Of a stretch of DNA of 64,000 nt, positions 17,535-58,216 are shown piece by piece; positions within the stretch are counted from its first letter, which is position 1, and every line of letters begins with the position of its first letter. Source of the DNA: Blastocladiella emersonii ATCC 22665 (lineage: Eukaryota; Fungi; Blastocladiomycota). Made by a program: the position numbers and the translations under genes. The notes beneath the pieces were generated by a model. The model saw only the letters and a program-made list of their open reading frames with translations. It ran no database searches and had not been told where the DNA came from. The DNA lies in NCBI GenBank assembly GCA_025594325.1, contig JANHCV010000013.1:992001-1056000 (forward strand), given 5' to 3'.

Positions 17535-17565
<31 letters not shown>

Positions 17566-18911: not shown

Positions 18912-18963
18912 GGAAGAGGTGTTATTTATCAATGGACAGCTTGGTGTGTGTGATGTTGTGGAT

Positions 18964-38228: not shown

Positions 38229-38553
38229 AGTTCAAGTACACACGCGCACGCTGGCCCAACCGCGAGAGACGCGTCGGGCAATCACGCGAGTGGCACGCGC
38301 CGGCGGCGCCACACTTCCAGTCACCGCTGGCGGACTGCCTCGCCGCGGGGTCGCACGCTCACCTCAAGCGAGCGTCTCCGCTCCCTCTGGTTTTGTTCGA
38401 GATCGCTGCTACTATTAGCCGTCGTTATACACCCTTTCCTCCCTTCTGCGTCTACCTCCTTCGCCGTGTCCATCACCGTCTCCGTCATCTCCTCAGCCTT
38501 CCGTGCATCGTGCTCAACCTTCCTCTCGCACCCTGCACCTGTACGCTTCAACT
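38229..38553 (+). repeat. 5' LTR (AGTTCAAG...CTTCAACT)
   Basis: Two differences from 62802-63126. Confidence 0.93.
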
Positions 38554-38565
38554 GGTTATGAGCCC
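38554..38565 (+). promoter_or_regulatory. Primer-binding site GGTTATGAGCCC
   Basis: Immediately follows the 5' LTR; resembles the copia internal-tRNAiMet PBS (GGTTATGGGCCC). Confidence 0.8.
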
Positions 38566-40772: not shown

Positions 40773-40777
40773 ATCAT

Positions 40778-41534
40778 TGCCGCTGCCCTTAAGGGCAGCG
40801 GCATTCAATGAAAGGAATGGGTGGCACGGGGTAGATCAAAGTACGTAGTACTACCGGTATGGGCGGATAGAACACGTGGCTACGATCTACGATGGCCGCG
40901 GCGATAGGTCACGTGAATTCCACGTGACGTCTCACACCCGACGCGTCTCCCTGAGTGTCTCACACTGACGCGGATGGCCACCCCACGCGTTGCTTACCCC
41001 GAGTGACGCGCCCGTGGAGCCCGCCAGGGCGAGGCTGTGGAAGTGAGCGTGGAGAAGGCGGTAGAGTAAATCAAGGATCTAAGCAGTAGAGCAGGTCTGA
41101 AGAACTTGAGTGAACGAACTTAAGAAGTCCGAAGAACTTGAGTGAACTGAACTTGAGTTAACTACTTTTTATAGATAACACGATAAATCGAGTTCGCGAT
41201 CCACTCGACCACTCACCGTAAGCAACAACCCTTTGCAAGTTCTTCGAAAACCGACCCCGACCTAAACGACGGGGTCCATTTCCGAACTTTTTGCAGAAGC
41301 AGCTTCGCGCCCTGATCGCCGAAGAATTTGCGAACTCGACTTATGAAGAAAACGGGCGTTCCGAAGAATTTGCAGTTGGTCGTAAAGTGAGTTCGTGGAG
41401 TTGTCATAAAGTGAGTTCGTGGAATTATTCGTGGAGGTGATTGTGGAAGTGATCGGCGCCAGGTCACGCGTCCCAGCGTGGAGCAGGGCAGCGGGAGACG
41501 CGTTGTGGAGTGGGACGCGTGGGGACGCGTGATC
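40778..41534 (+). repeat. Left TIR (757 bp), beginning with the 26-bp palindrome TGCCGCTGCCCTTAAGGGCAGCGGCA
   Basis: Aligned by hand to 57455-58211 with no gaps and one mismatch (41504/57485). Confidence 0.97.
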
Positions 41535-41545
41535 GGTGAACGCGT
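41466..41545 (+). promoter_or_regulatory. Cluster of five ACGCGT (MCB-like) sites upstream of the replication gene
   Basis: Sites at 41466, 41498, 41515, 41525 and 41540; function inferred only. Confidence 0.45.
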
Positions 41546-41672
41546 GTCTGGGACTTCAAAATCCAAATTAAGTACAGCGTACGACTATAGATCAAGTCCT
41601 GGACTATTCCGTCCAAACGCACTAAACGCATTTCCAAATTAAATACCAGCAAACAGTAAGAGCATCCACACC

Positions 41673-44600
41673 ATGAACTCCTCAATCTCGCCCAAGGCCT
41701 ACAAGCAGCAGACTGGTTCAACGCGCCAGTACAGCCGCGAATACGACGCCCACATCTTTGTCAAGTCGCACCGCGAAAACATTGGTGTTATCCCTCAAAA
41801 CCTTGCCTTTCGTCGCGCTGACGAGGACGGCGATTGCTTCACCTATGGGATCATCTGCCAGTTCACCGACGCCGCGGGCAAGAAGAAGGATTACTTTAAG
41901 TACGTAAACCTGACCAACAAGAAGATCAGCAAGTGGGTCCGTGAAGGTCAAAACAAGCAACTCTGTGAGCTGTTCCGCGACGGTCAGCTGGTGAAGCTCT
42001 ACTTTGATTTCGACTTTGACAAAAAGGTTGATGGCGTGCTCCAGTACAAGACATTGAGTGAGATCCAGGACTGGATCATTGATCAATTTCCGCTTGCCAA
42101 TAAGAAGACCATGAACATTTCAGGATACACCACCAGCGAGAAGCATTCGTACCACATCATCGTGCCTGAGTACAAGTTCATCTACGACGCAGGCGCGGGG
42201 AACGGTGTCTGCCAGGCGCTTAGTGAACTCTGCACTGAAAACAAGGACTTTGGCGCCGACGAGTCAGTGTACTCAAAGCATCGCAACATGAAGATTATCG
42301 GCAACTCCAAGCCAGGAAAGCAAGTTCAGGCGTATATCAGTGGTAACACAGACCTGGCGCATCACATGATTCGACTCTACGTGGATGATTCTGCAACCAC
42401 GCTCACTGCAGCTGACATCAAACTTTCACCCGAGGCAAAGGCTGCAATGATCAAGGCCAAGGCTGCCCCCGGTAAGGTCACGAGCTACAAGTTTGAGAAG
42501 GTTGCCACAGCCAAGATCCCAGCGGACTTCAACTATTACACCGCAAGTAACGAAGAGAAGCTAAAAAACGTTGATGGCAGCGCGTTCAGTAACGCCATTT
42601 TCCGTGACGTCGCGTGGTGGTTCAAGTCAGTAGGCGGAAGCTTTGAGTTCTACTGGGGGTGGGCGTCGCAGTGGAAGGAGGATCACAAACTGGCCAAGTA
42701 CGAGTCACTCTGGGAGCGCGGCACAGGGACCAACCTCCGCGATACTGTGATCAAGCAGTGGTACGCCGCAAACCACATGCAGACAACCAACACGATCCCC
42801 TTTATTGCCCCTGAAGACATTCAGACAGTCGTGATCCACAACCGTTACCTCACCAGTGACGTCTTCAGCCTTGGGACGAAGTACACGATTCTGGGCACGA
42901 ACATGGAGACGTACAAAACTGGCGTGTGCGTAGAAGATATGGATAAGCTTCCTGAAGACGCACGAGTTATGTGGATGACGCCGTTCATTGGCCTGGCTCA
43001 GAACACTCGTGGGCGCCTTAATGGATCATTTGCGCTTTACACTCAGATCAAGAAAAAGTCGCAGCTGCAGGACGTGAAGCGCCTCATTATGAGCCCGCTG
43101 TCTCTGCATCACTTCCACAACCCCCAGCCTTACCATACTGTGTACATCGACGAGTGTGAATCGCTGCTAAAGATGTTCACGGCCGGGATCGCCAAGAAGA
43201 ACATTGAGCGGACCTTCCCTATGTTCTGCGACATCCTGCGAAATGCGCAGAAAGTAGTGTTCCTTGACGCGATCTGCACGCCAATTCTGTTGAACTTTAT
43301 CCGCGATCTCGTTGGTACAGACACGTGGAAAGACGAGGTCTCACAGGCGGTTATTGCAGATGAGCACAAGCAGGCGCCAATTAAGCTGCTCAAGTTTGTA
43401 GACAAGGTGGTCACTAAAACGATCACTGTCCTCTGCAAGAAGGGCGAGAAGCCAGCCCCCAAGCCATGCGCTCATGAGAAGTGCAACTACAAAGCGAGCT
43501 TTGGCGATTTCTGCGGCCGTCACAAACCCAAGGACGCTGTGGTACCCGCTAAGCCCACTAAAGCTATTGAACAACGCACCTCTGCTGTCACTCTTTTCCT
43601 CAACGACCTCACAGCCAGCGTCAAGGACGGTAAGAAGGTATTCTGTTTCTGCCCAATTAAGCGATCGGCCACAAACCTCCTTAGTGCAGACACACTTGCA
43701 GATTACCTGAAGGCGACTTGTGAGCTCAATGAAAACAACGTGCTCGTGTACACCTCGGAGAACCACGCACTGAAGGCAGATTTTGTACCGTATCAACGAA
43801 GTCTGGTCTCAGGCACACGTCAATGTGGTCATTGTGACTGTTGCAGGAGCTGTTGGGCTGTCCTACTCCGTGTCATGCGATGGCGTCTTTGACAAGTTCC
43901 TCAAGGATGCTCGCACTTTTGATCGCGTGTACTGTGTTGTCGACGAGTTTTGCTCCACGCGTAACAGTCTACAGTCGCTCCGTCGTATTCGCCGCCCCGC
44001 TGATACAGACATCCGCATCGTCTTCACGGATTCTCGTTCCAAGCAAATCGCTGACCAGTTTAGCGAGCGCGCCCACGTCTTCCCTGCTGACCACACGTAC
44101 GCGAACCTTTTCGAAACCCTGAAGCATGACGTCCGAGTTGAAGAGCGCACACAACGAGGATCGGAGGGTCAACTGTTTCGCGAGTGGGCGGACAAGCTGG
44201 GTTTTGTGATTGTGGATTACGAGTCTGACGCAGCACCGCTCAAACGCGTCAAGTTTGAGCTCTCGTACGAGTACAAGAACATCCCAACACCATCAGACGA
44301 ACGCATCAAGGAAATGTCAAAGAACCTGGATCTTATCACTGCATCAGAGGGTTTGTACATTGAGAAGCGTCGTATTGATGGCAAGTACGCGCACCTCACA
44401 CCAGAGACGCGCGAATTCATTTTCAACAAGAAGCTGACAAAGCAGCTTGACATTGCGACAGCAGATCACATCCATGAGTTTGATGCCGACGCAAGCAGCG
44501 ATCACGCAAAGACTTTTATTCTGCAGCAGGTCCATGAGGCACTGGGCATCAAGCCGTTCCAGGACATCTCAACCCTGGTCATGCCAGAAATTCCCGGCAA

Positions 44601-45114
44601 CGTATCATCAACTATCACTGGACTGGCTAACAGCGTCTTCAACACGCGTCGATCCAAGATGAGCATCAGTTACATCGTCACACTGCTTAACTCAATTTAC
44701 GGCGTTGACGTGTACGTGCCCATGATCAACGCAAAGGGCGATACGATGAAGCACTCCACGACCCGCCTGACCATGTTTACACTCTCCAAGTTCGGAAAAT
44801 GCCTTGCTGAAGCGTACAGCCAATACGTTGCTGGAGAGCGTCGCGGAATTGAGTTTGAGATGCCAGCACCAAAGTCACCTGAATCGACTGCAGCCACTTC
44901 ATTGACCAACATTGTTGACACGCAGGCAAAGGCGCGCAAACCCGAGCCTCTCATTGAGCAGTCCCGTCAAACCACGCTTCCGTACAAGACCGCAAAGCAG
45001 CAGAAGATGGAACTAACAGCATTTGTGGGTGCTCTTGTTGGAGTACTGCGCGGACGTAAGTGTATGGAGAACGCGATCGCACCCTTTGTTCAAGGCATCG
45101 CAGTCTCCAGCTGA
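41673..45114 (+). CDS. AEP primase-polymerase (PrimPol/herpes-NCLDV type) + PriCT-like + UL9-like SF2 helicase; +1 frameshift near 43781-43784
   Basis: KLYFDFD, SYHII, DESVYSKHRNMKIIGNSKPGK (AEP motifs I-III); YIDECE, VFLDA; downstream frame VIVTVAGAVGLSY and QSLRRIR (SF2 motifs V and VI). Confidence 0.8.
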
Positions 45115-45240
45115 GTTTTAGATTTAAGTACGGCGAACCATAGTAGATCAGAGTCAAGATTCGTCTTGGCACCATTCAAACGCAAACGCACCAAACGCAA
45201 TCTTAAATTAAATACTCTGATCATAGTATAGTATCCGACA

Positions 45241-46767
45241 ATGAACGCCTCAGTTGCCACCGCTCTTGCCAACGCCCTGACCAAGGTCATGAACCAGCTC
45301 ACTACCATTACCACCGAAGTCTCAGTACTTCGCAAGGAGAACGCCGAGATGCGCGAGACAATCAATGCCATGCAGAACTCAATGAGTTACATGAGCACCT
45401 TTACAGAGGCGTTCCATACGTCTCTCAGCGAGGGTATCATCGAAAACACTGTCAGCAAGATGCTTAATGAGGCACTGACTCCAGTCAAGGGCGAGATTGC
45501 AGATCTCATCCAGTTTAACGTGATGACGCGCCACCACCACAGTCGCAAGCCTCAGATCAGCATCACCGACCTTGAACTTGGTGCATCTACTCCACTTCCT
45601 GAGCCTAAGCTATCTGAAAACAAATTCCTCGGCCTTTCAGGACCTAAGCGACAGCGTAAGGCTGTGATCAAGTCGGTTCAGGAGCTGGTTGAGGAACAGG
45701 TTGAGGAGCCGGTTGAGACCGTGATTGCAACGATCGAAATCCCTGAGGAAGTCGCCACAGAGCCATCTGTAGAGGAATTGAAAGCGGACCAAGAGTCCTG
45801 CAACATTGATGAGAATGGCCCCGAATTTGTCTTTGAGGACGTGATTAACGATTACGTTGACAACAAAAACAAACAAGGCGGATCACGTAACACTCAGACC
45901 ACCCGCCTTCAGATGCGTCAATGGTTCAAGGGCAATCAGTGCGTGGTGTACCATGAGCGCAAGCAGGTCAGTGTGTATGGTATGGACGCCGTGGAGCACT
46001 ACAGCACCGTCTTTGATGGACTCCCATCCAAAAAGCTGCAGAGTATCGCGGCATGCCTTAACGATGTAAAGCAGGCAGGCGTGCGATTCCGTAATGTGGA
46101 TATTGTAAAGATGCACGCAGCTGCACATGGCACTCGTGTTAATCGCGATAAGGTCCGTGTGATTGAGATGGCTCAGGAACCCCTCACAGTCACGTTTGAC
46201 CAGTGCAAGGCGTGGGCTGAGTCAGTCCCATTTGACAGCGAGCTTGATGATGCAACACTTGCTGTGATGATCAACGCCGCATCAGGCCTGCGCTGTGATC
46301 CAGTGTTCCTTACAACCTACAAGTCTGAAGAAGACTACCCGCACCTTGTTTTTGATGACGATATGAACGTGTTCCTCCAAGGTCGCATCATGTCAAAGGA
46401 GGAGGTGGCCAAGGCTAAGAACTACCGTATCAACATTCAACTGGATGAGGCTTTCGCAATGACGATTGTCCATAATGTAGAATTGCGCAAGGCTCGCGGC
46501 GATGGGTTTGTGTTTGGCAACCTGGTGGATGTCAACGATAAGGACAAGACACTGGACCGCTACAGCAAACTTGTCATTGCTGGAACAGCCAAGATCCCAG
46601 CTCTCAAGGGCGCAACAGTGAAGAGTTTCCGTAAGGCATGCGCGACTCGCGACACTGAACTGTACAGCACAAACCAGATCTCAACGGAGGAGTACACCGC
46701 CCGATTCCACGCTCGTGGCCATTCCGTTGACGTACTCGATCACTACTACCGCCCAGCTCAACAATAA
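45241..46767 (+). CDS. Tyrosine-recombinase-fold protein with N-terminal coiled coil (possibly protelomerase-like)
   Basis: SGLR...K...KSFRKACAT...RGHSVDVLDHYY gives R, K, K-x-x-R, H and Y with His-to-Tyr spacing 9. Confidence 0.75.
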   Translation: MNASVATALANALTKVMNQLTTITTEVSVLRKENAEMRETINAMQNSMSYMSTFTEAFHTSLSEGIIENTVSKMLNEALTPVKGEIADLIQFNVMTRHHHSRKPQISITDLELGASTPLPEPKLSENKFLGLSGPKRQRKAVIKSVQELVEEQVEEPVETVIATIEIPEEVATEPSVEELKADQESCNIDENGPEFVFEDVINDYVDNKNKQGGSRNTQTTRLQMRQWFKGNQCVVYHERKQVSVYGMDAVEHYSTVFDGLPSKKLQSIAACLNDVKQAGVRFRNVDIVKMHAAAHGTRVNRDKVRVIEMAQEPLTVTFDQCKAWAESVPFDSELDDATLAVMINAASGLRCDPVFLTTYKSEEDYPHLVFDDDMNVFLQGRIMSKEEVAKAKNYRINIQLDEAFAMTIVHNVELRKARGDGFVFGNLVDVNDKDKTLDRYSKLVIAGTAKIPALKGATVKSFRKACATRDTELYSTNQISTEEYTARFHARGHSVDVLDHYYRPAQQ

Positions 46768-46785
46768 TTTCTCAGAGAATAGTAA

Positions 46786-47913
46786 ATGCCAACAGAAAAG
46801 TACCCACACGAGCAGCCACTGACTGAGGATCAGGAGAAGTTTCTGCAAACGCTGTACTACACAAAGTACCCTGGAACTGGTTATAAGGGGCTGTTTGAAG
46901 CAGCTCAACGTGAGCGACCGTCGCAGATGGCGCATCTGTACCGCGCGCAGGTTGATGCATGGCTTAAGAAACAAACTACGTATCAGCTTTACAAACAAGC
47001 ACCTAAACGCGTAGATATCAGACGCACCACAGCGACATCGCCTGGCAAGGTCTTCCAGATCGATCTCTTGGACTTTGGAGGAGAGAACCGCCAGTTTAAA
47101 TCATTCCGTTACGTGATGGTCATGATTGATGTTGCAACGCGTCGCATTCACCTTGCAGCACTTAAAGCAAAAACCGCCGGCTCTTGCTTGAACGCGTTCA
47201 AAGCCATTGTTGCCAAGTACAGCTACTCCAAGCTGGTCATTCACTGTGACAATGGTACAGAATTCAACTCAATAGAGCAACTTCCAAACGTGACAATGGT
47301 GCGTGGCCGTGCAGGATCACCGTATGGACAAGGCATGGTTGAGTCTAAGAACAAAGAGGTACGACGCCACCTCAACATGTGGATGGATGGCACAGGATCC
47401 AAGAATTGGCCAAGTCATTTGCAGCAGTGTGAAGACTCAATCAACAGTCTAACAAAGCGAACCACTGGGCTGTCGCCTGACGAGCTTCATCAAATGTCAG
47501 CAAGTGATGCAAAGGCACACCTTGAAGAGGTTAAGGCACGGAACACAAAACCAGGAGACGTTGGTGACGGCTTACTCAAAGTCGGGACCAAAGTTCGAAC
47601 CAAGGTGCAGTTTAAAAGTGATCTTGACAAAAAGAACAGTAAACTATGGTCTACAGAAGTTTATGAGATCACTGAGGTGCGGAAACCTACTGGCATATCG
47701 ACCGCCAGCTACAAAGTAAATGGCGTTTCGCGATTCTGGAGTCGAAGCGAGCTCCAAGTGATCACTGACACGCAGACGTACACACCTCCGCCCCGCGATC
47801 AGCAAAATCCATTACCAGTCGTCCGGCGAACCTATCAACCGCCTAATCGCCGTGCGCCTTCGACTCGAGTGAGGCGAGTTCCAATCAAATACGCAAACGC
47901 AATCCTATATTAA
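46786..47913 (+). CDS. Retroviral-type (rve, DDE) integrase of Polinton/PLV type
   Basis: FQIDLLDF (D), IHCDNGTEF (D), QGMVESKNK (E); C-terminal KVGTKVR...WSTEVYEITEV domain. Confidence 0.92.
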   Translation: MPTEKYPHEQPLTEDQEKFLQTLYYTKYPGTGYKGLFEAAQRERPSQMAHLYRAQVDAWLKKQTTYQLYKQAPKRVDIRRTTATSPGKVFQIDLLDFGGENRQFKSFRYVMVMIDVATRRIHLAALKAKTAGSCLNAFKAIVAKYSYSKLVIHCDNGTEFNSIEQLPNVTMVRGRAGSPYGQGMVESKNKEVRRHLNMWMDGTGSKNWPSHLQQCEDSINSLTKRTTGLSPDELHQMSASDAKAHLEEVKARNTKPGDVGDGLLKVGTKVRTKVQFKSDLDKKNSKLWSTEVYEITEVRKPTGISTASYKVNGVSRFWSRSELQVITDTQTYTPPPRDQQNPLPVVRRTYQPPNRRAPSTRVRRVPIKYANAILY

Positions 47914-50126
47914 CGAAGGAGGAACAGGTTAATCGTGTAGTGAACGGACTGAGTCAGGGTTCCGCTGAGGTTGTTGCACATCCAGAGACAGCAGTACTGT
48001 TTGCCAGCCTCAAGGTACACTGCGCCGCTCCCGCACATGTATTGGCTGCTTGTGAACTTTGCAATGTTTACCGTTTGCCAGAATACTGAATCTTTCCCTG
48101 CCGGCATGCTGTCAGTTACGTTGAAGATGGATTGCGTGGCCGTGTGTTCAGGTACTGTTGATCCAACAGTGTACCAGTTGAACATGGAAACCATGTACCA
48201 GCCGCTCGTCGACACCGTCCATTGTCCATTTGCAGCACCTGCTGCGAGCAAGGATCCAATAGATGAGTTGACGATTGTTGCCTGTGAGTTTGCACCATTG
48301 ACGTACGCGTACGAACCGTTACTAAAAGAAATCGAGTTACTGTTGATTAGCAGCTGACCATATTTGATTGACGGACCGCTGACCGCAGCCACCGCAGTAT
48401 CCACGTAAGACTTGTTGGTCAAATGGTTTGACAAAGTGGGTGCTGTTGACGCAGAAACTGTTCCAGTCACATCAAGGTTACCAGTAAACTTTGATGCGCC
48501 AGTCACTGCGAACTTGTAGCTGAAATCAGGTTGCTGACCAATGCCGATCGAGTTGCCTGCGTTTGGACACACTGACACGCCGTTCGCGTCCGCTGAGCTG
48601 ATGTGCAGTACTTTGGTGACGGGATCGCAGAAGAGGTTGTTCACGCGGACCCCATTTACCTGCCAATCGATATAACTACCAGAAGTGGCTCCGCTGTTGA
48701 GTTTGATGAAAGGCGATGCTGACGTGTTGGTGAAACTGACGCCTGGAGTAGTCAGCGTACCAGACAGAGTGCACGACTTGTCAGCTGCTGTGAGAGTGAG
48801 CAGTGCGTTCTGGTTGTGGCAGCCAATCACGAAATTGCGATCGCCAACACCCCATGAGTTTAAGCCCATGACCCAAACATCGCCAGTTGTAGTCACTGTA
48901 CCTGCTGCGTTGCGATAGAACGCGGTGCCACACTCGCCGCCGTCAGTGGTATTGTAAACGCGTAGAGATCCACCGTTCGTTGATGCTTTGACATTGCACA
49001 GCCCGTTGACAGTTGTTGCTCCGCCCACATTCAGTGACTTGCTTACCCCAACACCCCCGGCCACTGTCAGCGCGCCATTGGTAGATGATGTTGAATCTGT
49101 GGTGTTACTGACTGCAATGACGTTTGAAGGGACCCACTGCGACACACCGGCGATCGCAGAGTTGAGTTGGCCAAGGGTTACTACGTGCGAGCTCACTGTG
49201 CCGTTGGCCGCGGTCAATGTACCTGAAACCGTTGCTGATCCACCCACGCTGAGCCCTTTCGCAATACCAAGTCCGCCAGACAACGTCAACGCGCCAGTTA
49301 CTGAGCTGACTGTATCAGTCGTGTTGCTGAAGGCCCATGCGTTGCTGAGCGGCAGAGCAGATTGCGAGAGCGTGCCAGTGAGCTTACTTGCTGAAACTCC
49401 AGTGATGAGAGCGTCGCTGACCGACACGCCAGTGACCTTTGACCATCCGATCCCAGTGATTTTTGCGTCAGTAACTGAGCCATCGCCGATCGCCGTTGCA
49501 GGGATTGTGCCAGTGATTTTGCTGCCACTGACTGTAAGGACGGACGTGTCAGGAACCCTGAGCAGGCCGCTTGGGATTGCACCTGTCAGCTTGCTGCTAT
49601 CCACGGAGATCAATCGCGAACTGGCTATGGTGCTGTCAGCAAAGGCCGTCGCGGCGAGCGTGCCAGTGAGCTTGGTAGTTGGGACTGTGGTCAAAGCGGT
49701 ACTTGGGATGGTGTTGTCGGCGATTACCGCGCCTGACAGTGACGTGACTTTGCTGCTTACGTCTGGAATTGCACTTAGACCAAGCGTCCCTGCAATCTTG
49801 CTGCCGTCAATGCCAGAAGACAAGTGACTGTTGTTGATCGCGCCTGACTTGATTGTGAGGGACGAATCCACCGTTGCAAACACTGTTGGATCTGCCTTGA
49901 GCGACACGTTGTTGGATACGATTTGCAGCGGGGCTGTGGTCGTGATGGAGGGTGCAACTCCAGCAACAACGTCAGCGACCTTTTGATCCACGTAACCCTT
50001 CGTTGCGGCTTGCGATGCGCTTGTAGGCATGACCAAATTGAGTTGAGTGATGATGGCGTCAAGATCTTCGTTACTGAATGACTGCGAGCCGCTCTGTCTC
50101 GTTTCGTTGAAGATATTCATCGACAT
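47910..50126 (-). CDS. Fiber/receptor-binding protein with shaft repeats and a C1q/TNF-like head
   Basis: ATKGYVD and TNKSYVD, repeated xSKLTGTL, two NTTD..S..GALT..GG.G..K.L.VGG repeats; C-terminal WTVSTSGWYMVS...VYLEAGKQY. Confidence 0.7.
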   Translation of the reverse strand: MSMNIFNETRQSGSQSFSNEDLDAIITQLNLVMPTSASQAATKGYVDQKVADVVAGVAPSITTTAPLQIVSNNVSLKADPTVFATVDSSLTIKSGAINNSHLSSGIDGSKIAGTLGLSAIPDVSSKVTSLSGAVIADNTIPSTALTTVPTTKLTGTLAATAFADSTIASSRLISVDSSKLTGAIPSGLLRVPDTSVLTVSGSKITGTIPATAIGDGSVTDAKITGIGWSKVTGVSVSDALITGVSASKLTGTLSQSALPLSNAWAFSNTTDTVSSVTGALTLSGGLGIAKGLSVGGSATVSGTLTAANGTVSSHVVTLGQLNSAIAGVSQWVPSNVIAVSNTTDSTSSTNGALTVAGGVGVSKSLNVGGATTVNGLCNVKASTNGGSLRVYNTTDGGECGTAFYRNAAGTVTTTGDVWVMGLNSWGVGDRNFVIGCHNQNALLTLTAADKSCTLSGTLTTPGVSFTNTSASPFIKLNSGATSGSYIDWQVNGVRVNNLFCDPVTKVLHISSADANGVSVCPNAGNSIGIGQQPDFSYKFAVTGASKFTGNLDVTGTVSASTAPTLSNHLTNKSYVDTAVAAVSGPSIKYGQLLINSNSISFSNGSYAYVNGANSQATIVNSSIGSLLAAGAANGQWTVSTSGWYMVSMFNWYTVGSTVPEHTATQSIFNVTDSMPAGKDSVFWQTVNIAKFTSSQYMCGSGAVYLEAGKQYCCLWMCNNLSGTLTQSVHYTINLFLLR

Positions 50127-50142
50127 TTTTTTATGTTACCAT

Positions 50143-50472
50143 ATGCTAAGAAATAAACTGGACAAGTTCAAGCTTGCAACCCTTGACTTTGACGATCAGT
50201 ACCGTCTGCTCACTGGCACTCTGGAGCCGCCATACGCGTGGGCTGTCAAGTCGCAAGCGAAGAAACAGAAATGGATCAACCGCACTTTGAAGCGACGCGG
50301 ACTTTGGCTTGCGCACAACCATGAAGGAGATCGCGCTGCAGCTCAGCGAATGCGCATGAAAGTCGAACTCGTGCGCCGCGAACGCGAACGCATGTCCAAT
50401 ATTTATGCACAACTTGGATTGCGCAAGAACATCAGTGGGAAAACGACGCAATTGCACGAATCACTGATGTAA
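50143..50472 (+). CDS. Small basic hypothetical viral protein (109 aa)
   Basis: ATG 50143 follows a T-tract like neighbouring viral genes; K/R-rich. Confidence 0.55.
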   Translation: MLRNKLDKFKLATLDFDDQYRLLTGTLEPPYAWAVKSQAKKQKWINRTLKRRGLWLAHNHEGDRAAAQRMRMKVELVRRERERMSNIYAQLGLRKNISGKTTQLHESLM

Positions 50473-50473
50473 A

Positions 50474-50685
50474 GTGCACAGAAACAGCGCAAAACTGCGC
50501 AAATGCACAGAAATTAGTGCACAGAAACAGCGCAAAACTGCGCACTGCACAGAAATTAGTGCACAGAAACAGCGCAAAACTGCGCAATGCACAGAAATTA
50601 GTGCACAGAAACTGCGCAAAACTGCGCAAAACTGCGCACTGCACAGAAATTAGTGCACAGAAACTGCGCAAAACTGCGCACTGCA
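50474..50685. repeat. About 5 copies of a 42-bp tandem repeat GTGCACAGAAAC(A/T)GCGCAAAACTGCGCA(C/A)TGCACAGAAATTA
   Basis: Directly visible; fills the only long internal non-coding gap of the virus. Confidence 0.9.
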
Positions 50686-50713
50686 AACTTTTTTTCCACC
50701 GTTACAGTAAACA

Positions 50714-52315
50714 ATGGGAAAATCACCACAACGCAAACCACGACCACGCAAATCTGCGCCATCAAAGCAATCGCCACTGCGAGACGGCGCATCACTTGCC
50801 TCGTACAAAGAAGTGTCATTGAAGAGGTTTAGGAGCAAGGAGAGCGCAGTATCGCGGATTAACAAAGAGTTCCCAGGTCTTTCTGCATTCATGGAGGGAA
50901 CCAAGATCGTCGTGGATGTTGATGGTAAGCAATTTTACTTTCACACACTTCCACAGTTGCAAGAGTCGTTTCAGCACATCATTGATGGCGGCGAACTACC
51001 TGCAGCAAACGACCCAAGATCAAGCAAAAAAGACGTTGAACGTGCAATCAAGGACTTGATTCGCACACCCAAACAAATTGAGATTGAAACCACTGGCCCA
51101 TCGCCGTCGAGCTCTCGCAAGCGAATCCCCATTCCGTCCAGCCGCCCAAAGGAACTCGAAGTGGTTGATGTGGACGCTGATGGCGACCAATCCATGGACG
51201 AGGCACAAGTCGATAACTCGCAGGCCATGATCCCAGTGCTGCCATCGCAAGTGCAATTCTCTGCTCCAATTGAGTCAGGTCCAGTAGTCGTATCTACCTC
51301 TACAGAAACACAAGTAGTAACTGGCGATTCAAGTCAGTACGCATCTGTCAGCGTCACTCCAAACGTGGGATCAGGTCCAGTAGTTAGTGTCGGCGATCAG
51401 TCAGTGGTGATCCCTCAAATGGGCAACAGTGCAGTCACGCCACCAAGTCAGTTCTACAAGGAGGGCCACGTGCCTGGTGTCGAGTACAGTCAGAACAACG
51501 CGTTCACTTTCACTCAAGTCAATAACCAAACAAACAACAGTACATCTAACGTTGTGAACAACACTCAAATCGACAACCGCCAAACCTTTGTTGATAGTCG
51601 CACGAGTAATGTTATCAACCAGTTCACCAACGTGTCAACGACTGCTGCGCTTCCACAAGAGTTCCTGTCTGGGCTAACGAACGCGTTCCAGACCATTTAC
51701 GACAACATTGGCACTGCAGCTGATCGCCAACGGCTGGCGGAGGAATACACACAGGAGCTACTCCAACAGCAGACGATCAAGAGCAACCAAGAAATGCAAA
51801 CCCTTGCGCAAGAGCTCATTGACGCTTCACGGAGACAGAGTAATGCTGTCGTTGCGGCAGTCAACGCGCAGACTGCGTCGCTACAGAGCGTCAACAAAGC
51901 AATTGAATCGACCGGCGACACGATCGTCCAAGCGCAGCAAGCAGCGGCAAGCTCAACACAGGCGGCTGTTGGTCAGAGCACTCAGAGCATCATTGACGCG
52001 ATTCGCAGTATTCCCGTCCCTGAGTCTGGAGACGCCGGCGTCCGCGATGAACTTGCAAAGCTGTCAGAGCAACTAACCGCCACGATTAAAAATTCTGGTG
52101 GTAATAGTAACAACGCCGACATGGAGAAAATCCTCAATGAAATGCTCAGGGTCATGAAGATCCAGAACAAGTCCGCGCTGAAGAAGCAAAGTCTCTACGA
52201 GAACCGCATGACTGGGCTGTACTCAAGTCCGTCTGTCGTGCCAGTCTCGTTCAAACCACCTCCACGCAAGATCATGGATCTGCCCAAGATCAAGACTGCT
52301 CAGGTCAAATGGTGA
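50714..52315 (+). CDS. Hypothetical viral protein (533 aa): basic N-terminus, S/T/N/Q-rich middle, coiled coil
   Basis: Intact ORF just upstream of the morphogenesis block; no family recognised. Confidence 0.7.
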   Translation: MGKSPQRKPRPRKSAPSKQSPLRDGASLASYKEVSLKRFRSKESAVSRINKEFPGLSAFMEGTKIVVDVDGKQFYFHTLPQLQESFQHIIDGGELPAANDPRSSKKDVERAIKDLIRTPKQIEIETTGPSPSSSRKRIPIPSSRPKELEVVDVDADGDQSMDEAQVDNSQAMIPVLPSQVQFSAPIESGPVVVSTSTETQVVTGDSSQYASVSVTPNVGSGPVVSVGDQSVVIPQMGNSAVTPPSQFYKEGHVPGVEYSQNNAFTFTQVNNQTNNSTSNVVNNTQIDNRQTFVDSRTSNVINQFTNVSTTAALPQEFLSGLTNAFQTIYDNIGTAADRQRLAEEYTQELLQQQTIKSNQEMQTLAQELIDASRRQSNAVVAAVNAQTASLQSVNKAIESTGDTIVQAQQAAASSTQAAVGQSTQSIIDAIRSIPVPESGDAGVRDELAKLSEQLTATIKNSGGNSNNADMEKILNEMLRVMKIQNKSALKKQSLYENRMTGLYSSPSVVPVSFKPPPRKIMDLPKIKTAQVKW

Positions 52316-52340
52316 TTTTTTTCTCAACACAATAGTTATA

Positions 52341-53138
52341 ATGACACAACGCACTTTTGATATCGTACCAGTTGACGATGGTCAATTCAGTCAAAAAAAC
52401 AAAGACCCAGTCCCGATCCTGCTCCCAGAGTTCTCGCTCATGTTGCTTGGAGGCAAGGGCCAGGGAAAGTCCACTATCATCTACAATTTGCTTGCTGGCG
52501 AGGCGTTTTATCGCAGTTACTTTGATCGTATTGTAATCTTCTGTCCAACGCTGTGGTCAGACGCAAAGTATCGCAAGCTGCTCAAGGAACACACGCTGCG
52601 TAAACGCAAAGTGGATTATCCAGATGGAACGGCGCCCGTGGGCAATGACAATGATCCAGACGCGCAATGCATCCGCGAGTACTACACTGAGCCGCGGAGG
52701 TTCATGCCGGAACTCAACACGCTTCGCGACGCTTACAAAAAGAAGTTTGAGGAGACACATGACAAGGAAACTCTGCCACGCACGCTCATGATTTTCGACG
52801 ATTGCCTTGGGCTCAAGTTCCTCAAAGACCCCGACCTGCAGAACTTTATTGCTAACAGTCGACACTACCGCTGTTCGGTAATCTTTAGTGTGCAGTACTG
52901 GACCAGCATTCCACCAGCCATTCGTGAAAACAACAGCGGAGTGATTCTCTTCCCTACATGGAACCGCGCGCAGCTGGAGAAAATTTACTTGGAAAACGCA
53001 TCAAAGCTGAGCAAGCAGGCGTTCTTTGACATGGTAGAAGATCTCTTTGACCAACCTGGTCGGCCTTTCCTCGTGATCAACAACCAAAATTCAATAGAGT
53101 ATCGTTTCAACGACTCGTTTAAGCACTGGTTGCAATGA
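52341..53138 (+). CDS. A32/FtsK-HerA-like genome-packaging ATPase
   Basis: Walker A GGKGQGKS, Walker B LMIFDD, A32 signature SRHYRCSVIFSVQYWTSIPPAIREN. Confidence 0.93.
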   Translation: MTQRTFDIVPVDDGQFSQKNKDPVPILLPEFSLMLLGGKGQGKSTIIYNLLAGEAFYRSYFDRIVIFCPTLWSDAKYRKLLKEHTLRKRKVDYPDGTAPVGNDNDPDAQCIREYYTEPRRFMPELNTLRDAYKKKFEETHDKETLPRTLMIFDDCLGLKFLKDPDLQNFIANSRHYRCSVIFSVQYWTSIPPAIRENNSGVILFPTWNRAQLEKIYLENASKLSKQAFFDMVEDLFDQPGRPFLVINNQNSIEYRFNDSFKHWLQ

Positions 53139-53174
53139 AACTTTTTTTTTCTTGCGTGTAACTAAACCACACAA

Positions 53175-54434
53175 ATGGCTACCAGTCCCCGTAAGTTTAA
53201 CGAGATCACTCCAGTGACAGCTGATCCCTTCACCCAGTTTGACGTGCCCAAGATGGCTCCTGACGGCGAGCGCGTTTCAACGCAATTTCCTTCAAGCAAT
53301 GGGTCATGGTTCATTGGCGGTCGGTCCATCCGCATTCCCATTCCCAATGTGTCGCTGTTCATGGACACAAAGACGTCAGGTGTAGTGCTCAAGGCCAAGA
53401 CCGTCATCCCCAAGACGCGCTTCTCAGAGGGCATTCACTGCATTGTCAAGACACTCAACGTCTACGCCAAGAACAACCAGCTCATTGAGTCGATTTCAGG
53501 GTACAACCTGATTGCCAGCTGCCTCGCTGGTATGACCGTGACCCAGGATCTGCGATCAGGTCCGCTTGCCATCTCGCAGGGTTATAACAAGGGTGACGCC
53601 ACCGACGACACTGTCCAGATGACGTACTTCCTTCCGCTCACACTGTCTGCCATCCTTGGCAACGGCAAGGCGCTCCCTCTCAAGTACTTTGGCGGTCTTG
53701 TCGTTGAAATTGTCCTTGAGGACGCCGTCAAGTGCCTTGTGCGCCAACAAGGCGTCGACGTGACCAAAACGATCAGTAATAGCTCATACAGCGTTGAGGA
53801 TCCGTATTACCTCGCTAACTGCATTAGTTACAGCGACATGCAAGACGCAATCTACGATCAGGCGTTCCTGGAGAGTGGTCTGACGCTCTATGGCTCAACA
53901 TATGCCCTGTCCCCCCTCATGTGGAACACGCCAGCTGCACAGCTTGCGATCTCAAATCGCGACGCAAGCATCAAGGACATTACTGTGATCACCCAGCTCA
54001 AGGACGTCGTGGATGGCGACGCCATCAATGTGGACAAGTTCCTCAGATACAGTAACATTATCAAGAGTGCTCAGTGGAGCTGCGCGGGCAAGCTGACACC
54101 AGCTACTCCACTTGCCAGCGACAAGCTCCAGTCAGCCTTCTTCCAGGAGGCCCAAGACGCACTGCATCATCGAGCCCTTGGTTGGCGAATGACTCCTGCA
54201 CTTTGGGCTGCCGCTACACCCACTGATGATTCTTCGTTTGTGCTCATGCGCGAATTCGAGTCGAGTCGCACGCTGATCAGCGGTCTGTCGCTGCACAAAG
54301 AGAAGAACGTGGATATCTATGCTCAAGTCGCCACGCTTGCAGCGGCCCATCCGCAGTGCTACGTCTCGGCGTACGTTCATCTGGACTATATGGTCACCTT
54401 CAAGCCCGATGGCTCTGTTGAAGTTACCCGCTAA
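53175..54434 (+). CDS. Major capsid protein (double jelly-roll, predicted)
   Basis: 419-aa beta-rich ORF directly after the ATPase; SIRIPIP...LIESISGYNLI pattern resembles PLV MCPs; fold not verified. Confidence 0.8.
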   Translation: MATSPRKFNEITPVTADPFTQFDVPKMAPDGERVSTQFPSSNGSWFIGGRSIRIPIPNVSLFMDTKTSGVVLKAKTVIPKTRFSEGIHCIVKTLNVYAKNNQLIESISGYNLIASCLAGMTVTQDLRSGPLAISQGYNKGDATDDTVQMTYFLPLTLSAILGNGKALPLKYFGGLVVEIVLEDAVKCLVRQQGVDVTKTISNSSYSVEDPYYLANCISYSDMQDAIYDQAFLESGLTLYGSTYALSPLMWNTPAAQLAISNRDASIKDITVITQLKDVVDGDAINVDKFLRYSNIIKSAQWSCAGKLTPATPLASDKLQSAFFQEAQDALHHRALGWRMTPALWAAATPTDDSSFVLMREFESSRTLISGLSLHKEKNVDIYAQVATLAAAHPQCYVSAYVHLDYMVTFKPDGSVEVTR

Positions 54435-54472
54435 ATTGAAAGACCACTACCGATATTTATTTTCTTACCCAT

Positions 54473-54733
54473 ATGTTAACCCCCAACATGTGGTTAAAGA
54501 ATATCTGGACCAACTTTACTCAACCGCTCAAAACAACACTCATGAACGCTGGTCGCGTGCTGAACGCAAACGCCCCACACATCATCCATGGCATCAAAAC
54601 AGTTGCTCGATGGGCGGGCAACTTCAACCCTGCATGGAGTCCAGTCACCGATCTTGTTCAACGAGGCGCCGACCTCGCACAGGATGCGTGGGACTACTAC
54701 AATAGGGTGGAGCCAGGTGGAGGCGGAAATTAA
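54473..54733 (+). CDS. Small amphipathic virion-associated protein (86 aa)
   Basis: Lies between MCP and penton; Trp-rich amphipathic segments; PGGGGN C-terminus. Confidence 0.6.
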   Translation: MLTPNMWLKNIWTNFTQPLKTTLMNAGRVLNANAPHIIHGIKTVARWAGNFNPAWSPVTDLVQRGADLAQDAWDYYNRVEPGGGGN

Positions 54734-54755
54734 TTCTCGTGACTAATGGTAAACC

Positions 54756-55520
54756 ATGATCGACAACACCAACTACAAATCAGTGACTATTTGCTCAAGT
54801 GACCTCGTCCAGGATCGCTTCCAGTTGCCTCAGCCCATTGCCGTTCGTGCAGTTCGTGTCAACAGCGCATTCTTTTGTCATTCGTGGTACAACGTCACCC
54901 TTGAAAAGAACACAGTGTATCTAACGCAGAAGACGTCTCTCGGTGTACTTAAGCCAGGCAAGGTGTCAATCGCCCCAGGGAACTATAGCGCGTCGTCATT
55001 CTGTGTTGCGCTCAAGGCGGCACTTAATTCTCAGGTGGGCGTTGCGCCAACGTTCTGGAATGGATCGTTTGATGTTGCGCTGAACTCGGTCACCAACACG
55101 CTCTATGTGACAAATTCGAGCGGCGATCCATTCATGTTCGTGCCTGGAGACAATAACATGTACGATCTCATGGGCTTCAACAAACTGACCAATTTCTATG
55201 GCAACATACAACAGGGGATCGATGCAATTAACCTCGTGGATACCAAAATTGTGAATGTGCGTTCTATTAATCTGGGCACAGTGCTAAACGACAACATTCA
55301 CAGCTCTTTCCCCAACGATAACAGCATCTTGTGTTCGTTCTACGTGCTGAGTCCAAGCGGATACTACTCAGAGTACCGCCCACATCAATCAAGTTACATG
55401 CACATGAGCCGCGACCAACCAGTGTTGATCAGTCACATTGATCTCATGCTCTGCGATGAGCGACTCCAGAAGCTCAACTTCATGGGCGCAGAGTGGTACG
55501 TCACGATTGACTTTCTGTGA
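54756..55520 (+). CDS. Minor capsid protein (penton, single jelly-roll, predicted)
   Basis: 254 aa; SWYNV, ISHIDLMLCDERLQKLNFMG..WYVTIDF resemble Polinton/PLV penton C-termini; position after the MCP. Confidence 0.75.
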   Translation: MIDNTNYKSVTICSSDLVQDRFQLPQPIAVRAVRVNSAFFCHSWYNVTLEKNTVYLTQKTSLGVLKPGKVSIAPGNYSASSFCVALKAALNSQVGVAPTFWNGSFDVALNSVTNTLYVTNSSGDPFMFVPGDNNMYDLMGFNKLTNFYGNIQQGIDAINLVDTKIVNVRSINLGTVLNDNIHSSFPNDNSILCSFYVLSPSGYYSEYRPHQSSYMHMSRDQPVLISHIDLMLCDERLQKLNFMGAEWYVTIDFL

Positions 55521-55546
55521 TTTTTTTTCATGGTGTGTAGTAAACC

Positions 55547-55642
55547 ATGCTTGACATCATCATTCTTGGTATCAACGTAGCAATCCTCCTTAGCCAGTTC
55601 GCGATCATTGGCTACCAGCAGAGCGAAAAAAAGCGCGAGTGA
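55547..55642 (+). CDS. 31-aa single-pass membrane micro-protein (below the ORF-track cutoff)
   Basis: MLDIIILGINVAILLSQFAIIGYQQSEKKRE*; preceded by the T-tract...GTAAACCATG motif shared with other viral genes. Confidence 0.55.
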   Translation: MLDIIILGINVAILLSQFAIIGYQQSEKKRE

Positions 55643-55901
55643 AACGCACCAAACGCACCAAACGCACTGCATACGATCATTATTTTCTGGTGCCAACTGT
55701 AAATGGACACTCCTGCACGCAGATCACCAACCAAGGCTCAAGAAGCCTCCCGAAAGACATCCCGTAAGGAGAAGCCTGCAAAGGAGCCAGCGAAGCCATA
55801 CCGCATTGCGATTCGCGGCAAGCTCGCTCCAGGTGAGGTCTACCGTGTCTTGTTCTACTGAACACATTCAAACGTGATTCATGTTACCTTTGAATGATCT
55901 G

Positions 55902-56465
55902 TTACTCATCAGTCGGCATTGCATCAAATTCTACGCGCAGTTTTCCGGTCTTGTTACGGATGTGGTTCTGGTAATCCGCGCGGATGTCAGCAAAGGTGTC
56001 GCTTGCAGACTCAAGTGCTGCAAGAAGTGCAGGGTTAAAGGTCTTGTTGCGGATTTGCGCACCAATCAAGAACCAATCCATGCGCTTATCTCTAAGTCGT
56101 TGTTCAAAGGCTCTCTCCATGTCTCGGCTAAGATCGTCAAAGGTATCATTGTATGAGTGCATGAATTGGAACAACCTATCCCTGCTGCGTGCTCGATCGT
56201 ACTTTGCCATCATTGACTCATTTTGTCGAAGTTCGTATTCTGCTTTTCTGTATTGATCGGCCATGACCTTGTACGTTTGCAAGAAGTGCTTTGGAACGTT
56301 AGATCGGCACATTATGCATGTCTTTTCGCCAGAACGACCACGCACGCACAGCCAGCATACCTGCATTCCACATTTGCAACACCAGACTCGATTGTTGCCA
56401 ACGAATGCGCTTGTGCACGTTGGACAATGAGTGTTCCAGTTCACTGTCGATGCTACAGAATCCAT
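55902..56465 (-). CDS. RING-finger-like protein with coiled coil
   Basis: CPTC...CCKC...CWLC...CIMC eight-ligand pattern; T-tract...GTAAACATG start context. Confidence 0.7.
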   Translation of the reverse strand: MDSVASTVNWNTHCPTCTSAFVGNNRVWCCKCGMQVCWLCVRGRSGEKTCIMCRSNVPKHFLQTYKVMADQYRKAEYELRQNESMMAKYDRARSRDRLFQFMHSYNDTFDDLSRDMERAFEQRLRDKRMDWFLIGAQIRNKTFNPALLAALESASDTFADIRADYQNHIRNKTGKLRVEFDAMPTDE

Positions 56466-56576
56466 GTTTACGATTTAGGTAGGAAAAAAACTCTTTGGAA
56501 CCCAAGCACTGAGACGGGCGCAAGTCTTTATTCAGAGTCTCGGCATCTTCTAATGCCCACAGCAGTAATCACGAAC

Positions 56577-57348
56577 TCAATCGTCGTAGCCGTACATGGC
56601 GTTGTCCTCGTCGTCGGACACGATCTTGGGGGTGTCGGCGCGCGACTGCTCTTCGATGGGCGACTCGGGAAGCGGGACCTCCTCGGGGTTCGAGTTGCGG
56701 CGAGCCTTGTTGAAGGACGGCGAGTCGTCCTTGGTGCGCGCCTTCTTGGAGCGCGGGATCGGGGCGGGCGGGTCGACGTCGTCCTTAAAGTTGATCGAGC
56801 GGATGTGCTTGGGCGTGACGGCGAGCAGGAACGGCGTTGAGGGCGTCGAGAAATGCGAGGGAGCGTCGTCGTCTAATGTGCGCGAGAACGTAGTCAGCGG
56901 GCGATCGTGGCGTGCGAGTCAGCGGGAAAACCGTACCGCCGCGCTTGCGCTTCTTCTTGATCAGCTTGTCGATGCTGCCCTGGATCTGGTCGAAGGTGTT
57001 GGCCTTGAGCTCGAGGATCTGCTGCTTGAGGGTCGCGTTCTCGGCGTGCATGTTGGTGATGACGTTCTGGTACATGGTCTTGATCGAGTCGGCGAAACGC
57101 GCACTGTTCTCATAGCGCTCGGCCATGTTGACGTTCATGTACTCGAGCGGGGCGTCGCGGAAGGCGGCGATGACGGCCGGCAGGTCCTTGTGGAACGCGC
57201 GCCACTGCGTCGACTTGCGCTCGACGAACTCGGTGTAGATCTTCTCGTGGTCGACCTTGGGGAACTTGCGGTGCACCAGGTCCGACATCTGCTTAGCAAA
57301 GTCGTCGAGCTGCTCGGTGATGTGGTCGCGGTAGTTCGAAGGATCCAT
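56577..57348 (-). CDS. Viral gene with a 64-nt spliceosomal intron (56873-56936); 235-aa coiled-coil/NLS protein
   Basis: GTACGG...GCTGAC...TAG intron; splicing restores GGC G|AC GAC and opens a 98-codon GC3-rich exon ending YGYDD*; KKKRKR just before the intron. Confidence 0.75.
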
Positions 57349-57415
57349 GGTTTTCTGCGTTTGAGGAGCGCGGGTGGAGCGCGGGGGTGCGGGGGATTTG
57401 TGGGCGCGGACACGG

Positions 57416-57523
57416 ACGCGTCGCGTTGACCCAGGGGTGACGCGTGGGAATTCGGATCACGCGTCCCCACGCGTCCCACTCCACGACGCGTCTCCCGCTG
57501 CCCTGCTCCACGCTGGGACGCGT
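57416..57523 (-). promoter_or_regulatory. Cluster of six ACGCGT (MCB-like) sites upstream of the intron-containing gene
   Basis: Sites at 57416, 57440, 57459, 57469, 57486 and 57518; two lie outside the TIR. Confidence 0.45.
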
Positions 57524-58211
57524 GACCTGGCGCCGATCACTTCCACAATCACCTCCACGAATAATTCCACGAACTCACTTTATGACAACTCCACGAACTC
57601 ACTTTACGACCAACTGCAAATTCTTCGGAACGCCCGTTTTCTTCATAAGTCGAGTTCGCAAATTCTTCGGCGATCAGGGCGCGAAGCTGCTTCTGCAAAA
57701 AGTTCGGAAATGGACCCCGTCGTTTAGGTCGGGGTCGGTTTTCGAAGAACTTGCAAAGGGTTGTTGCTTACGGTGAGTGGTCGAGTGGATCGCGAACTCG
57801 ATTTATCGTGTTATCTATAAAAAGTAGTTAACTCAAGTTCAGTTCACTCAAGTTCTTCGGACTTCTTAAGTTCGTTCACTCAAGTTCTTCAGACCTGCTC
57901 TACTGCTTAGATCCTTGATTTACTCTACCGCCTTCTCCACGCTCACTTCCACAGCCTCGCCCTGGCGGGCTCCACGGGCGCGTCACTCGGGGTAAGCAAC
58001 GCGTGGGGTGGCCATCCGCGTCAGTGTGAGACACTCAGGGAGACGCGTCGGGTGTGAGACGTCACGTGGAATTCACGTGACCTATCGCCGCGGCCATCGT
58101 AGATCGTAGCCACGTGTTCTATCCGCCCATACCGGTAGTACTACGTACTTTGATCTACCCCGTGCCACCCATTCCTTTCATTGAATGCCGCTGCCCTTAA
58201 GGGCAGCGGCA
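57455..58211 (-). repeat. Right TIR (757 bp), ending in the same 26-bp palindrome (58186-58211)
   Basis: Reverse complement of 40778-41534. Confidence 0.97.
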
Positions 58212-58216
58212 ATCAT

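Follow-up and report, generated by a model that had tools for sequence, protein, structure and literature searches.

A bounded element nested in a copia retrotransposon

The window analysed here is a stretch of 64,000 nt from contig JANHCV010000013.1 of assembly GCA_025594325.1, and all coordinates are positions in it unless another record is named. It contains an element of 17,434 bp that is flanked by long terminal inverted repeats (TIRs) and carries genes for a packaging ATPase, predicted capsid proteins and a retroviral-type integrase (Table 1). The assembly is that of Blastocladiella emersonii, a member of the Blastocladiomycota (PMC9730499), in agreement with the zoosporic fungus that an initial annotation of the window had proposed as the host. 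That annotation took the element for a complete and very young endogenous polinton-like virus (PLV).

The limits of the element are sharply defined. A search for inverted repeats in the 39-60 kb region returned a single pair, 40772-41534 against 57455-58217. After trimming to the element, each arm measures 757 nt, the two arms differ by exactly 1 mismatch, and their complementarity breaks off sharply at the inner ends. The element starts with TG and ends with CA, and it is bordered on both sides by ATCAT, a 5-bp target-site duplication (TSD) whose two copies are identical. Repeat search and direct reading thus confirm the repeats, the ends and the duplication just as they were first described. 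In addition, the outermost 26 nt of each end form a perfect palindrome, TGCCGC...GCGGCA, which as single-stranded DNA would form a hairpin with a stem of 11 bp and a loop of 4 nt (z = -4.1 relative to shuffled sequences). The G+C content of the element is 51.6%, compared with 62.8% in the left and 64.5% in the right flank; no DNA shared between the element and the remaining window was detected, and scans of the window for tRNAs and for Rfam families gave no match.

The element sits inside a Ty1/copia retrotransposon. The pol open reading frame (ORF) of this retrotransposon matches Pfam RVT_2 (E = 5e-50) as well as rve and SH3_retrovirus, and its probable long terminal repeats (LTRs), present as direct repeats, differ from each other at 2 bases. 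Both flanks of the element also carry one GC-rich minisatellite of 33-36 bp with the same consensus core. An identical 18-nt sequence is found just outside both copia LTRs, with a gap of 1 nt to the left LTR and of 4 nt to the right one, which is unusual for an LTR element.

Nesting in a young retrotransposon brackets the age of the element and makes a chimeric assembly very unlikely. Taken together with the single TIR mismatch and the intact TSD, it indicates that the insertion is recent, and the description of the element as very young therefore stands. All genes but one are intact. "Complete" was accordingly right for the ends and for nearly all genes, and not for the replication gene, which occupies two reading frames.

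Predicted capsid proteins and packaging ATPase

The gene products were compared with those of five related loci: L004 from B. emersonii itself, L026 from Allomyces macrogynus, and L002, L003 and L027 from environmental or read-archive contigs. The only named sequence relatives returned by the searches are two hypothetical proteins of Blastocladiomycota.

Structure prediction found jelly-roll folds in both proteins that the initial annotation had put forward as the major capsid protein (MCP) and the penton. A lack of these folds would have refuted that annotation, and the models thus run against this refuting condition. At the sequence level, the MCP had no family-profile match and no match to a PDB sequence, and neither the MCP nor the penton found a match as a single sequence in a word-index protein search. 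An exhaustive HMMER search of 1.84 billion representatives nevertheless retrieved 71 relatives of the MCP at E <= 1e-3, and an alignment of 40 of these 71 was used to build an AlphaFold2 model with a predicted local distance difference test score (pLDDT) of 88.4 and a predicted template modelling score (pTM) of 0.87. When compared with the PDB by Foldseek, the model matched the MCPs of iridovirus, PBCV-1, EhV and faustovirus at E = 1e-17 to 1e-13, with iridovirus and PBCV-1 at 1e-17 to 1e-15, and those of mavirus and Sputnik at E ~1e-12, in all cases with a probability of 1.0 and a template modelling score of about 0.6. The top match in the BFVD library of predicted viral structures had an E of 3e-23. 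By its predicted fold, this protein is a double jelly-roll MCP.

Relatives of the penton were found only with a profile built from four syntenic homologues. Homologues are present in all the related loci, and the same profile found no relative in IMG/VR. In a Foldseek comparison with the PDB, the AlphaFold2 model (pLDDT 69, pTM 0.58) matched the mavirus penton (6g41/6g42) first, at E = 3e-9, and Sputnik 3j26_N at E = 1e-8, with a probability of 1.0; a chain from a PBCV-1 capsid entry and then a long run of adenovirus penton bases followed at lower rank. On the strength of this model the protein is a penton, a minor capsid protein with a single jelly roll, whose closest match is the mavirus penton.

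The packaging ATPase, also named in the initial annotation, matches Pfam Pox_A32 at E = 5.3e-10, with 39.6 bits against a curated cut-off of 22.8, and the PHROG terminase large subunit at E = 1e-8. Its Walker motifs are invariant across the relatives. ATPases on IMG/VR and JGI metagenome contigs are only 25-30% identical to it. In the interval between the MCP and the penton lies a gene for a small conserved protein of 86 aa, to which L002, L004 and L026 contribute homologues (E = 1e-10 to 1e-14).

Integrase, replication gene and an integrase-associated protein

The rve integrase claimed for the element is well supported. The protein, of the retroviral DDE type, matches Pfam rve above the cut-off (E = 3e-9) and an IS481-type NCBIfam profile at E = 6e-15, and its residues D155 and E186 are invariant in four homologues. 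The possibility that it is a stray copy of the copia integrase was rejected, since the two are 25% identical over 83 residues, compared with 42-46% identity to the integrases of L004 and the Allomyces element.

Replication functions appear to be encoded in the two ORFs at the left end of the element. The helicase part matches NCBIfam CyRepA1 at E = 1.2e-10 and Pfam Herpes_ori_bp at E = 3.6e-4. The N-terminal domain resembles Pfam Prim-pol 4 at E = 2.5e-4 and 21.4 bits, below the 25-bit cut-off, and a profile of this domain found no match in the PDB; the motifs of an archaeo-eukaryotic primase (AEP), namely DxD (I), SxH (II) and D..Y (III, D..VYSKHR), are conserved with the L004 homologue, which is 29% identical. 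The protein is thus a putative primase-helicase, as had been proposed: the helicase profile matches and the conserved primase motifs speak for the label, with support weaker than that for the integrase or the ATPase and with the gene split over two frames. There is one frame change and no other stop, the second ORF has no nearby ATG, and the gene model of the relative is at least 1006 aa long. The two ORFs read as one gene broken once, which could be explained by mutation, by an error in the assembly or by a short intron. The replication protein also has, at residues ~599-622, a weak match (E = 0.037, below the cut-off) to EsV-1-7, a cysteine-rich motif known in phaeoviruses.

The gene for a 508-aa protein lies immediately upstream of the integrase gene, and it does so in every one of the Blastocladiomycota elements. 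The homologue in Allomyces is 41% identical over 340 aa, and that in L004 is 27% identical over the C-terminus. The initial annotation called this protein a tyrosine recombinase, a label that we have dropped because every profile and sequence test of it failed: no tyrosine-recombinase match was found in Pfam, PHROGs, NCBIfam or the PDB with single sequences or with profiles of two and three sequences, and tblastn against phages gave no match; no other protein family was matched either. The C-terminus does contain a pattern resembling R..R..GHS..YY; within it, Allomyces has Q in place of the first R, and HxxR lacks its H. From its sequence the protein may be a divergent recombinase, a possibility that we regard as doubtful; as judged by conservation and gene position, it is a conserved integrase-associated protein of no assigned family.

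Related elements, fibre-like gene and remaining genes

Gene order is shared between the element and the five relatives. In each, a fibre gene on the minus strand is followed by a small gene, a gene for a protein of ~500-630 aa, the A32 ATPase gene, the MCP gene, a second small gene and the penton gene, with an rve gene nearby. L004 lies on another contig of the B. emersonii assembly and is diverged, with an MCP 32% identical to that of the window, a G+C content of ~60% and a primase gene that is inverted relative to the arrangement in the window and extends past the edge of the locus. All L004 genes had been called by the annotators, and no TIR was found within the 21 kb examined. L026 has a G+C content of ~52%, compared with ~65% in its host, and TIRs of at least 950 bp. 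Its terminus is a near-palindrome of the same form, TGCCGC...GCGGCA, ending in CA, and for replication it carries a gene of the DUF5906 type in place of one of the primase-helicase type.

The fibre-like protein is rich in repeats that resemble plant-type leucine-rich repeats, and its gene is the sole large gene on the minus strand in the left and central parts of the element. Homologues occupy the same position in the same orientation in L002, L003, L004, L026 and L027, and the one in L027 carries Peptidase_S74, a chaperone domain of fibres and tailspikes, which makes "fibre" a reasonable label. The identification made in the initial annotation is therefore plausible from the position-matched homologues. 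The fibre gene and the 109-aa gene next to it are arranged head to head with their start codons (50126/50143) 16 nt apart, and this close spacing is kept in L002, L003 and L004, where it amounts to 13-27 nt.

Between the 109-aa gene and the 533-aa gene lies a tandem repeat of 42 bp, which could be an origin or an enhancer. The palindromic hexamers GTGCAC and TGCGCA abound in this repeat, which was not seen in the relatives. The position of the 533-aa gene is held by a gene for 497-632 aa in all relatives; it is position alone that is conserved, as similarity in sequence could not be detected between relatives. To the right of the penton gene there are two tentative tiny ORFs, of which the hydrophobic one (31 aa) may encode a membrane protein and the very basic one (52 aa) a DNA-condensing protein. 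These are followed by a gene for a RING-like protein, which matches Pfam zf-RING_5 below the cut-off (E = 0.014), and by a gene of similar size at the right end. Where about 13 genes had been counted before, we find 12 that are well supported and these 2 tentative ORFs.

Profile scans of the ORFs agree with the reported lack of a protein-primed family-B DNA polymerase (pPolB) and of an adenain-like protease. Neither pPolB nor any other DNA polymerase was matched by any ORF in Pfam, PHROGs or NCBIfam, and no ORF of the element matched an RNA polymerase in Pfam or NCBIfam. The adenain-like cysteine protease was likewise matched by none of the ORFs scanned, and the genes are packed so densely that every ORF large enough to encode it was covered by the scans.

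Table 1. Positions of the element, its genes, the surrounding retrotransposon and the related loci
Feature	Position	Strand	Size	Remarks
Ty1/copia LTR retrotransposon	38229-63128	+		surrounds the element
Probable left LTR of copia	38229-38555		327 bp	direct repeat
Left TSD copy	40773-40777			ATCAT, read directly, identical to right copy
Whole element	40778-58211		17,434 bp	bounded by TIRs and TSD
Left TIR	40778-41534		757 bp	non-coding; starts TG
Putative replication gene, AEP-type primase and UL9/CyRepA1-like helicase	41673-45114	+		two ORFs, one frame change
Conserved integrase-associated protein	45241-46767	+	508 aa	earlier label "tyrosine recombinase"; no family assigned
rve (retroviral-type DDE) integrase	46786-47913	+	375 aa	full length
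Fibre-like protein	47910-50126	-	738 aa	repeat-rich
Small conserved protein	50143-50472	+	109 aa	homologues in L002, L003, L004
42-bp tandem repeat	50473-50685		4.8 copies	intergenic, upstream of 533-aa gene
533-aa protein	50714-52315	+	533 aa	Q/N/S/T-rich; no family match
A32/FtsK-type packaging ATPase	52341-53138	+	265 aa	Walker A and B intact
Double jelly-roll MCP (predicted fold)	53175-54434	+	419 aa	AlphaFold2 and Foldseek
Small conserved protein	54473-54733	+	86 aa	MCP-penton interval
Penton, minor capsid single jelly roll (predicted fold)	54756-55520	+	254 aa	AlphaFold2 and Foldseek
Tentative hydrophobic ORF	55547-55642	+	31 aa	T-run/GTAAAC motif upstream
Tentative very basic ORF	55703-55861	+	52 aa	CAAACGCA repeats upstream
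RING-like protein	55902-56465	-	187 aa	N-terminal Cys-rich zinc finger
Right-end protein	56785-57348	-	187 aa	CAAACGCA just upstream; no family match
Right TIR	57455-58211		757 bp	ends CA
Right TSD copy	58212-58216		5 bp	ATCAT
copia pol ORF	59435-62773	+	1112 aa	directly 5' of right LTR
Probable right LTR of copia	62802-63128		327 bp	direct repeat
L004	JANHCV010000010.1:763922-785142	reversed		second, diverged element on another B. emersonii contig
L026	GG745331.1:607682-628996			Allomyces macrogynus ATCC 38327; protein KNE57041.1
L027	ENA ERZ27299535 k119_312750			environmental relative; extra C5 DNA methylase gene
L003	Logan ERR3281035_47835			relative; extra HNH-AP2 endonuclease gene

Promoter-like motifs

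Two kinds of motif recur directly upstream of the genes. In the first, a stretch of 7-9 T residues leads into a C, and ~10-14 nt further on stands GTAAAC, no more than ~10 nt from the ATG. The 533-aa gene, the MCP gene, the RING-like gene and the 31-aa ORF all have this motif upstream, while the ATPase gene is preceded by a close variant with the same T-run and TAGTTA in place of GTAAAC, and weaker versions are found before other genes. T-runs occur at these upstream sites only, and the pattern of T-run, GTAAAC and ATG was observed 5 times where ~0.4 occurrences would be expected. The same T-run arrangement stands before the genes of the capsid module in L002, L003, L004 and the Allomyces element.

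The second motif, CAAACGCA, is often repeated and is located upstream of the replication gene, the 508-aa gene, the 52-aa ORF and the right-end gene. The window has 13 such sites, nine of them within the element, with ~4 expected for the window as a whole. In L004 and the Allomyces element, TGCGTTCAAACGCA is found before the corresponding genes. The presence of two distinct promoter-like motifs on different sets of genes points to two expression classes and, from these sequence patterns, suggests that a family-wide factor reads them; this factor may come from the host, the virus or a helper virus.

Comparison with known systems

PLVs are small double-stranded DNA (dsDNA) viruses that belong to the supergroup of polintons, virophages and adenoviruses. 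They are ~14-40 kb in size, often have TIRs and are able to integrate; the element in the window has 17,434 bp, 757-bp TIRs and a 5-bp TSD. Its MCP, penton, A32 ATPase, TIRs and size, together with the fact that no pPolB or protease was detected, place it in the PLV class, as the initial annotation had it. In our judgement, the element is an integrated PLV genome in the nuclear genome of B. emersonii with a probability of about 0.9. Assignment to the polintons proper or to the virophages as a family was rejected, as pPolB and the protease are missing.

Polintons (Mavericks, Polintoviricetes) have in common with the element the rve integrase, long TIRs, a short TSD, a double jelly-roll MCP, a penton and an A32 ATPase. 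They possess pPolB and an adenain-like protease, whereas in the window element neither was detected and a putative primase-helicase is present instead; the TSD of a classical polinton is 6 bp long, as against 5 bp here. Among the virophages (Lavidaviridae/Maveriviricetes), mavirus and then Sputnik have the pentons closest in fold to the predicted penton of the element, and mavirus, which integrates into a protist host, likewise carries an rve integrase. The cysteine protease that is a hallmark of the virophage morphogenetic module was not detected in the element, and the MCP model fits capsids of the giant-virus type better than virophage capsids (1e-17 against 1e-12).

A close precedent in a fungus is the integrated PLV of the chytrid Spizellomyces punctatus, which was described in 2021 together with a metagenomic group around it (Bellas & Sommaruga, PMC7805220). 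As in the present case, the host is a zoosporic fungus and the PLV lies centrally within a large contig, and the elements in that study have TIRs, TSDs of 5-7 bp and rve or tyrosine-recombinase genes. The hosts differ, Chytridiomycota there and Blastocladiomycota here, and about half of the S. punctatus group has a chitinase gene, of which none was found in the window element; the two systems are compared by description only. Aquatic metagenomic PLVs (framework preprint 10.64898/2026.06.19.733378) resemble the element in MCP, penton and A32 ATPase, and in them an AEP primase or a helicase replaces pPolB. Their fusions involve SF1 or SF3 helicases, whereas the matches in the window element are UL9/CyRepA1-like (SF2-type). 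The same source reports PLV-type ATPases in many chytrid genomes.

For the Blastocladiomycota, a survey preprint lists without comment 30 dsDNA viral regions (1.27%) in the B. emersonii assembly and 12 in Allomyces javanicus, and it states that fungi have yielded no dsDNA virus isolate (bioRxiv 10.1101/2025.04.19.649669). Giant viruses (Mycodnaviridae) that infect Blastocladiomycota, especially Allomyces, were described in 2026 (PMC13533422). Our literature search found no paper linking Blastocladiella with polintons, nor any that cites the three read-archive sample identifiers of the relatives. The statement in the initial annotation that DNA viruses of fungi are rarely described thus holds in so far as this group has barely been described in fungi; precedents do exist in the S. 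punctatus PLV, the chytrid ATPases and the 30 listed regions.

Proposed mechanism and alternative explanations

From what is established for rve integrases and for the PRD1-adenovirus lineage, a mechanism can be proposed. The rve integrase would recognise the TG...CA ends and join them to staggered cuts 5 bp apart, which would give rise to the 5-bp target duplication. The element's own AEP primase and helicase would start replication, and a host or helper DNA polymerase would complete it; a borrowed polymerase is proposed because the element encodes none. The genes with CAAACGCA and the capsid-module genes with T-run/GTAAAC would be expressed as two classes. Trimers of the MCP and pentamers of the penton would form an icosahedral shell, which the A32 ATPase would fill, and attachment would be the task of the fibre-like protein. 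That particles form, that they are infectious and that zoospores are the stage of entry are likewise inferences.

Four points weigh against the reading of the element as an integrated PLV genome. The penton model is only moderately confident. With its replication gene split over two frames, this copy may be replication-defective, unless an intron or an error in the assembly accounts for the split. Decay is evident in the Allomyces relative, whose rve and MCP genes each contain one frame change and whose fibre matches over the C-terminal ~150 residues only, so at least some members of the family are dead insertions. Finally, exact-sequence look-ups found no identical records of the window MCP, ATPase, integrase or copia pol, a result that gives no copy number for the genome.

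The alternative that survives best refines the PLV reading. The element would be a virophage-like PLV, silent in the fungal genome and expressed and packaged only upon infection by Mycodnaviridae, through the transcription and replication machinery of the giant virus. Consistent with this, giant viruses are known from Allomyces (PMC13533422) and a related element resides in Allomyces macrogynus; neither a DNA nor an RNA polymerase was found in the element; and the family-specific motifs near the start codons are kept in relatives at 30-40% protein identity, as virophages likewise use promoters of their helpers. The predicted folds fit as well, the MCP being nearest to capsids of the phycodnavirus and iridovirus type and the penton nearest to that of the virophage mavirus. 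However, PMC13533422 does not mention Blastocladiella, many PLVs are thought to be autonomous, and the hallmark cysteine protease is absent, and on balance we consider dependence on a giant virus somewhat unlikely. An extension of the same idea is that the Blastocladiomycota have a PLV lineage of their own, characterised by TGCCGC...GCGGCA termini, an integrase-partner protein and a two-class promoter code, whose members act as virophage-like parasites of Mycodnaviridae and possibly in defence of the host. We hold this to be unlikely; if true, it would provide the first tripartite system of a fungus, a giant virus and a small virus.

The element could also be a transposon only, which moves, or once moved, within the genome by its integrase, forms no particles and has intact capsid genes merely because it is young. 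The frame change in the replication gene, the insertion into repetitive DNA within another mobile element and the decay of the Allomyces relative would all fit such an origin, and the 30 viral regions listed for the assembly are consistent with spread within the genome. What makes it distinctly unlikely is the conservation of the capsid, penton, ATPase, fibre and small structural genes, in order and at full length, down to ~30% identity and on environmental contigs too, which implies that the lineage has long been under selection for virion function. A G+C content 12 points under that of the host also argues for recent arrival from outside and not for long residence. That the element arose through chimeric assembly, or from a contaminant contig fused to fungal DNA, is highly improbable: the strong contrast in composition with the flanks and the near absence of annotated genes would suit it, but the 5-bp duplication is perfect, the same minisatellite unit lies on both sides, both flanks belong to one retrotransposon, with its terminal repeats on either side of the insertion, the contig extends over 1.38 Mb, and a second, diverged family member is located on another contig of the same genome.

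Significance and annotation of the locus

So far, the evidence for dsDNA viruses of fungi comes from sequences of giant viruses in zoosporic fungi, from a single PLV integrated in a chytrid genome and from bulk counts. PLVs as such are already known; what is new here is a near-intact, recent member in B. emersonii with distinctive termini and promoter-like motifs that extend across its family. The element, probably a PLV genome, is clearly bounded and very recent and resides in a culturable model fungus with a good genome, and it has relatives in Allomyces, a genus with active giant viruses. The circulation of small DNA viruses in fungi, their interaction with fungal giant viruses and the choice of insertion sites can now be approached from reads, transcriptomes and proteomes that already exist.

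The locus is also of relevance to annotation, since the deposited gene models miss nearly all of the element. Over window positions 43299-58211 there are two deposited models only. One, of 219 aa, is a spliced artefact over the MCP gene and is 100% identical to the MCP in two stretches; the other, of 235 aa, covers the right-end 187-aa gene (56785-57348). The low G+C content of the element, unsuited to a gene predictor trained on the host, is the likely cause of the poor annotation.

Elsewhere in the window, two features unrelated to the element were noted. A tandem array with a 26-bp period lies at 35594-36308, and the region 15000-19000 has a G+C content of 70-76% and very long ORFs on both strands.

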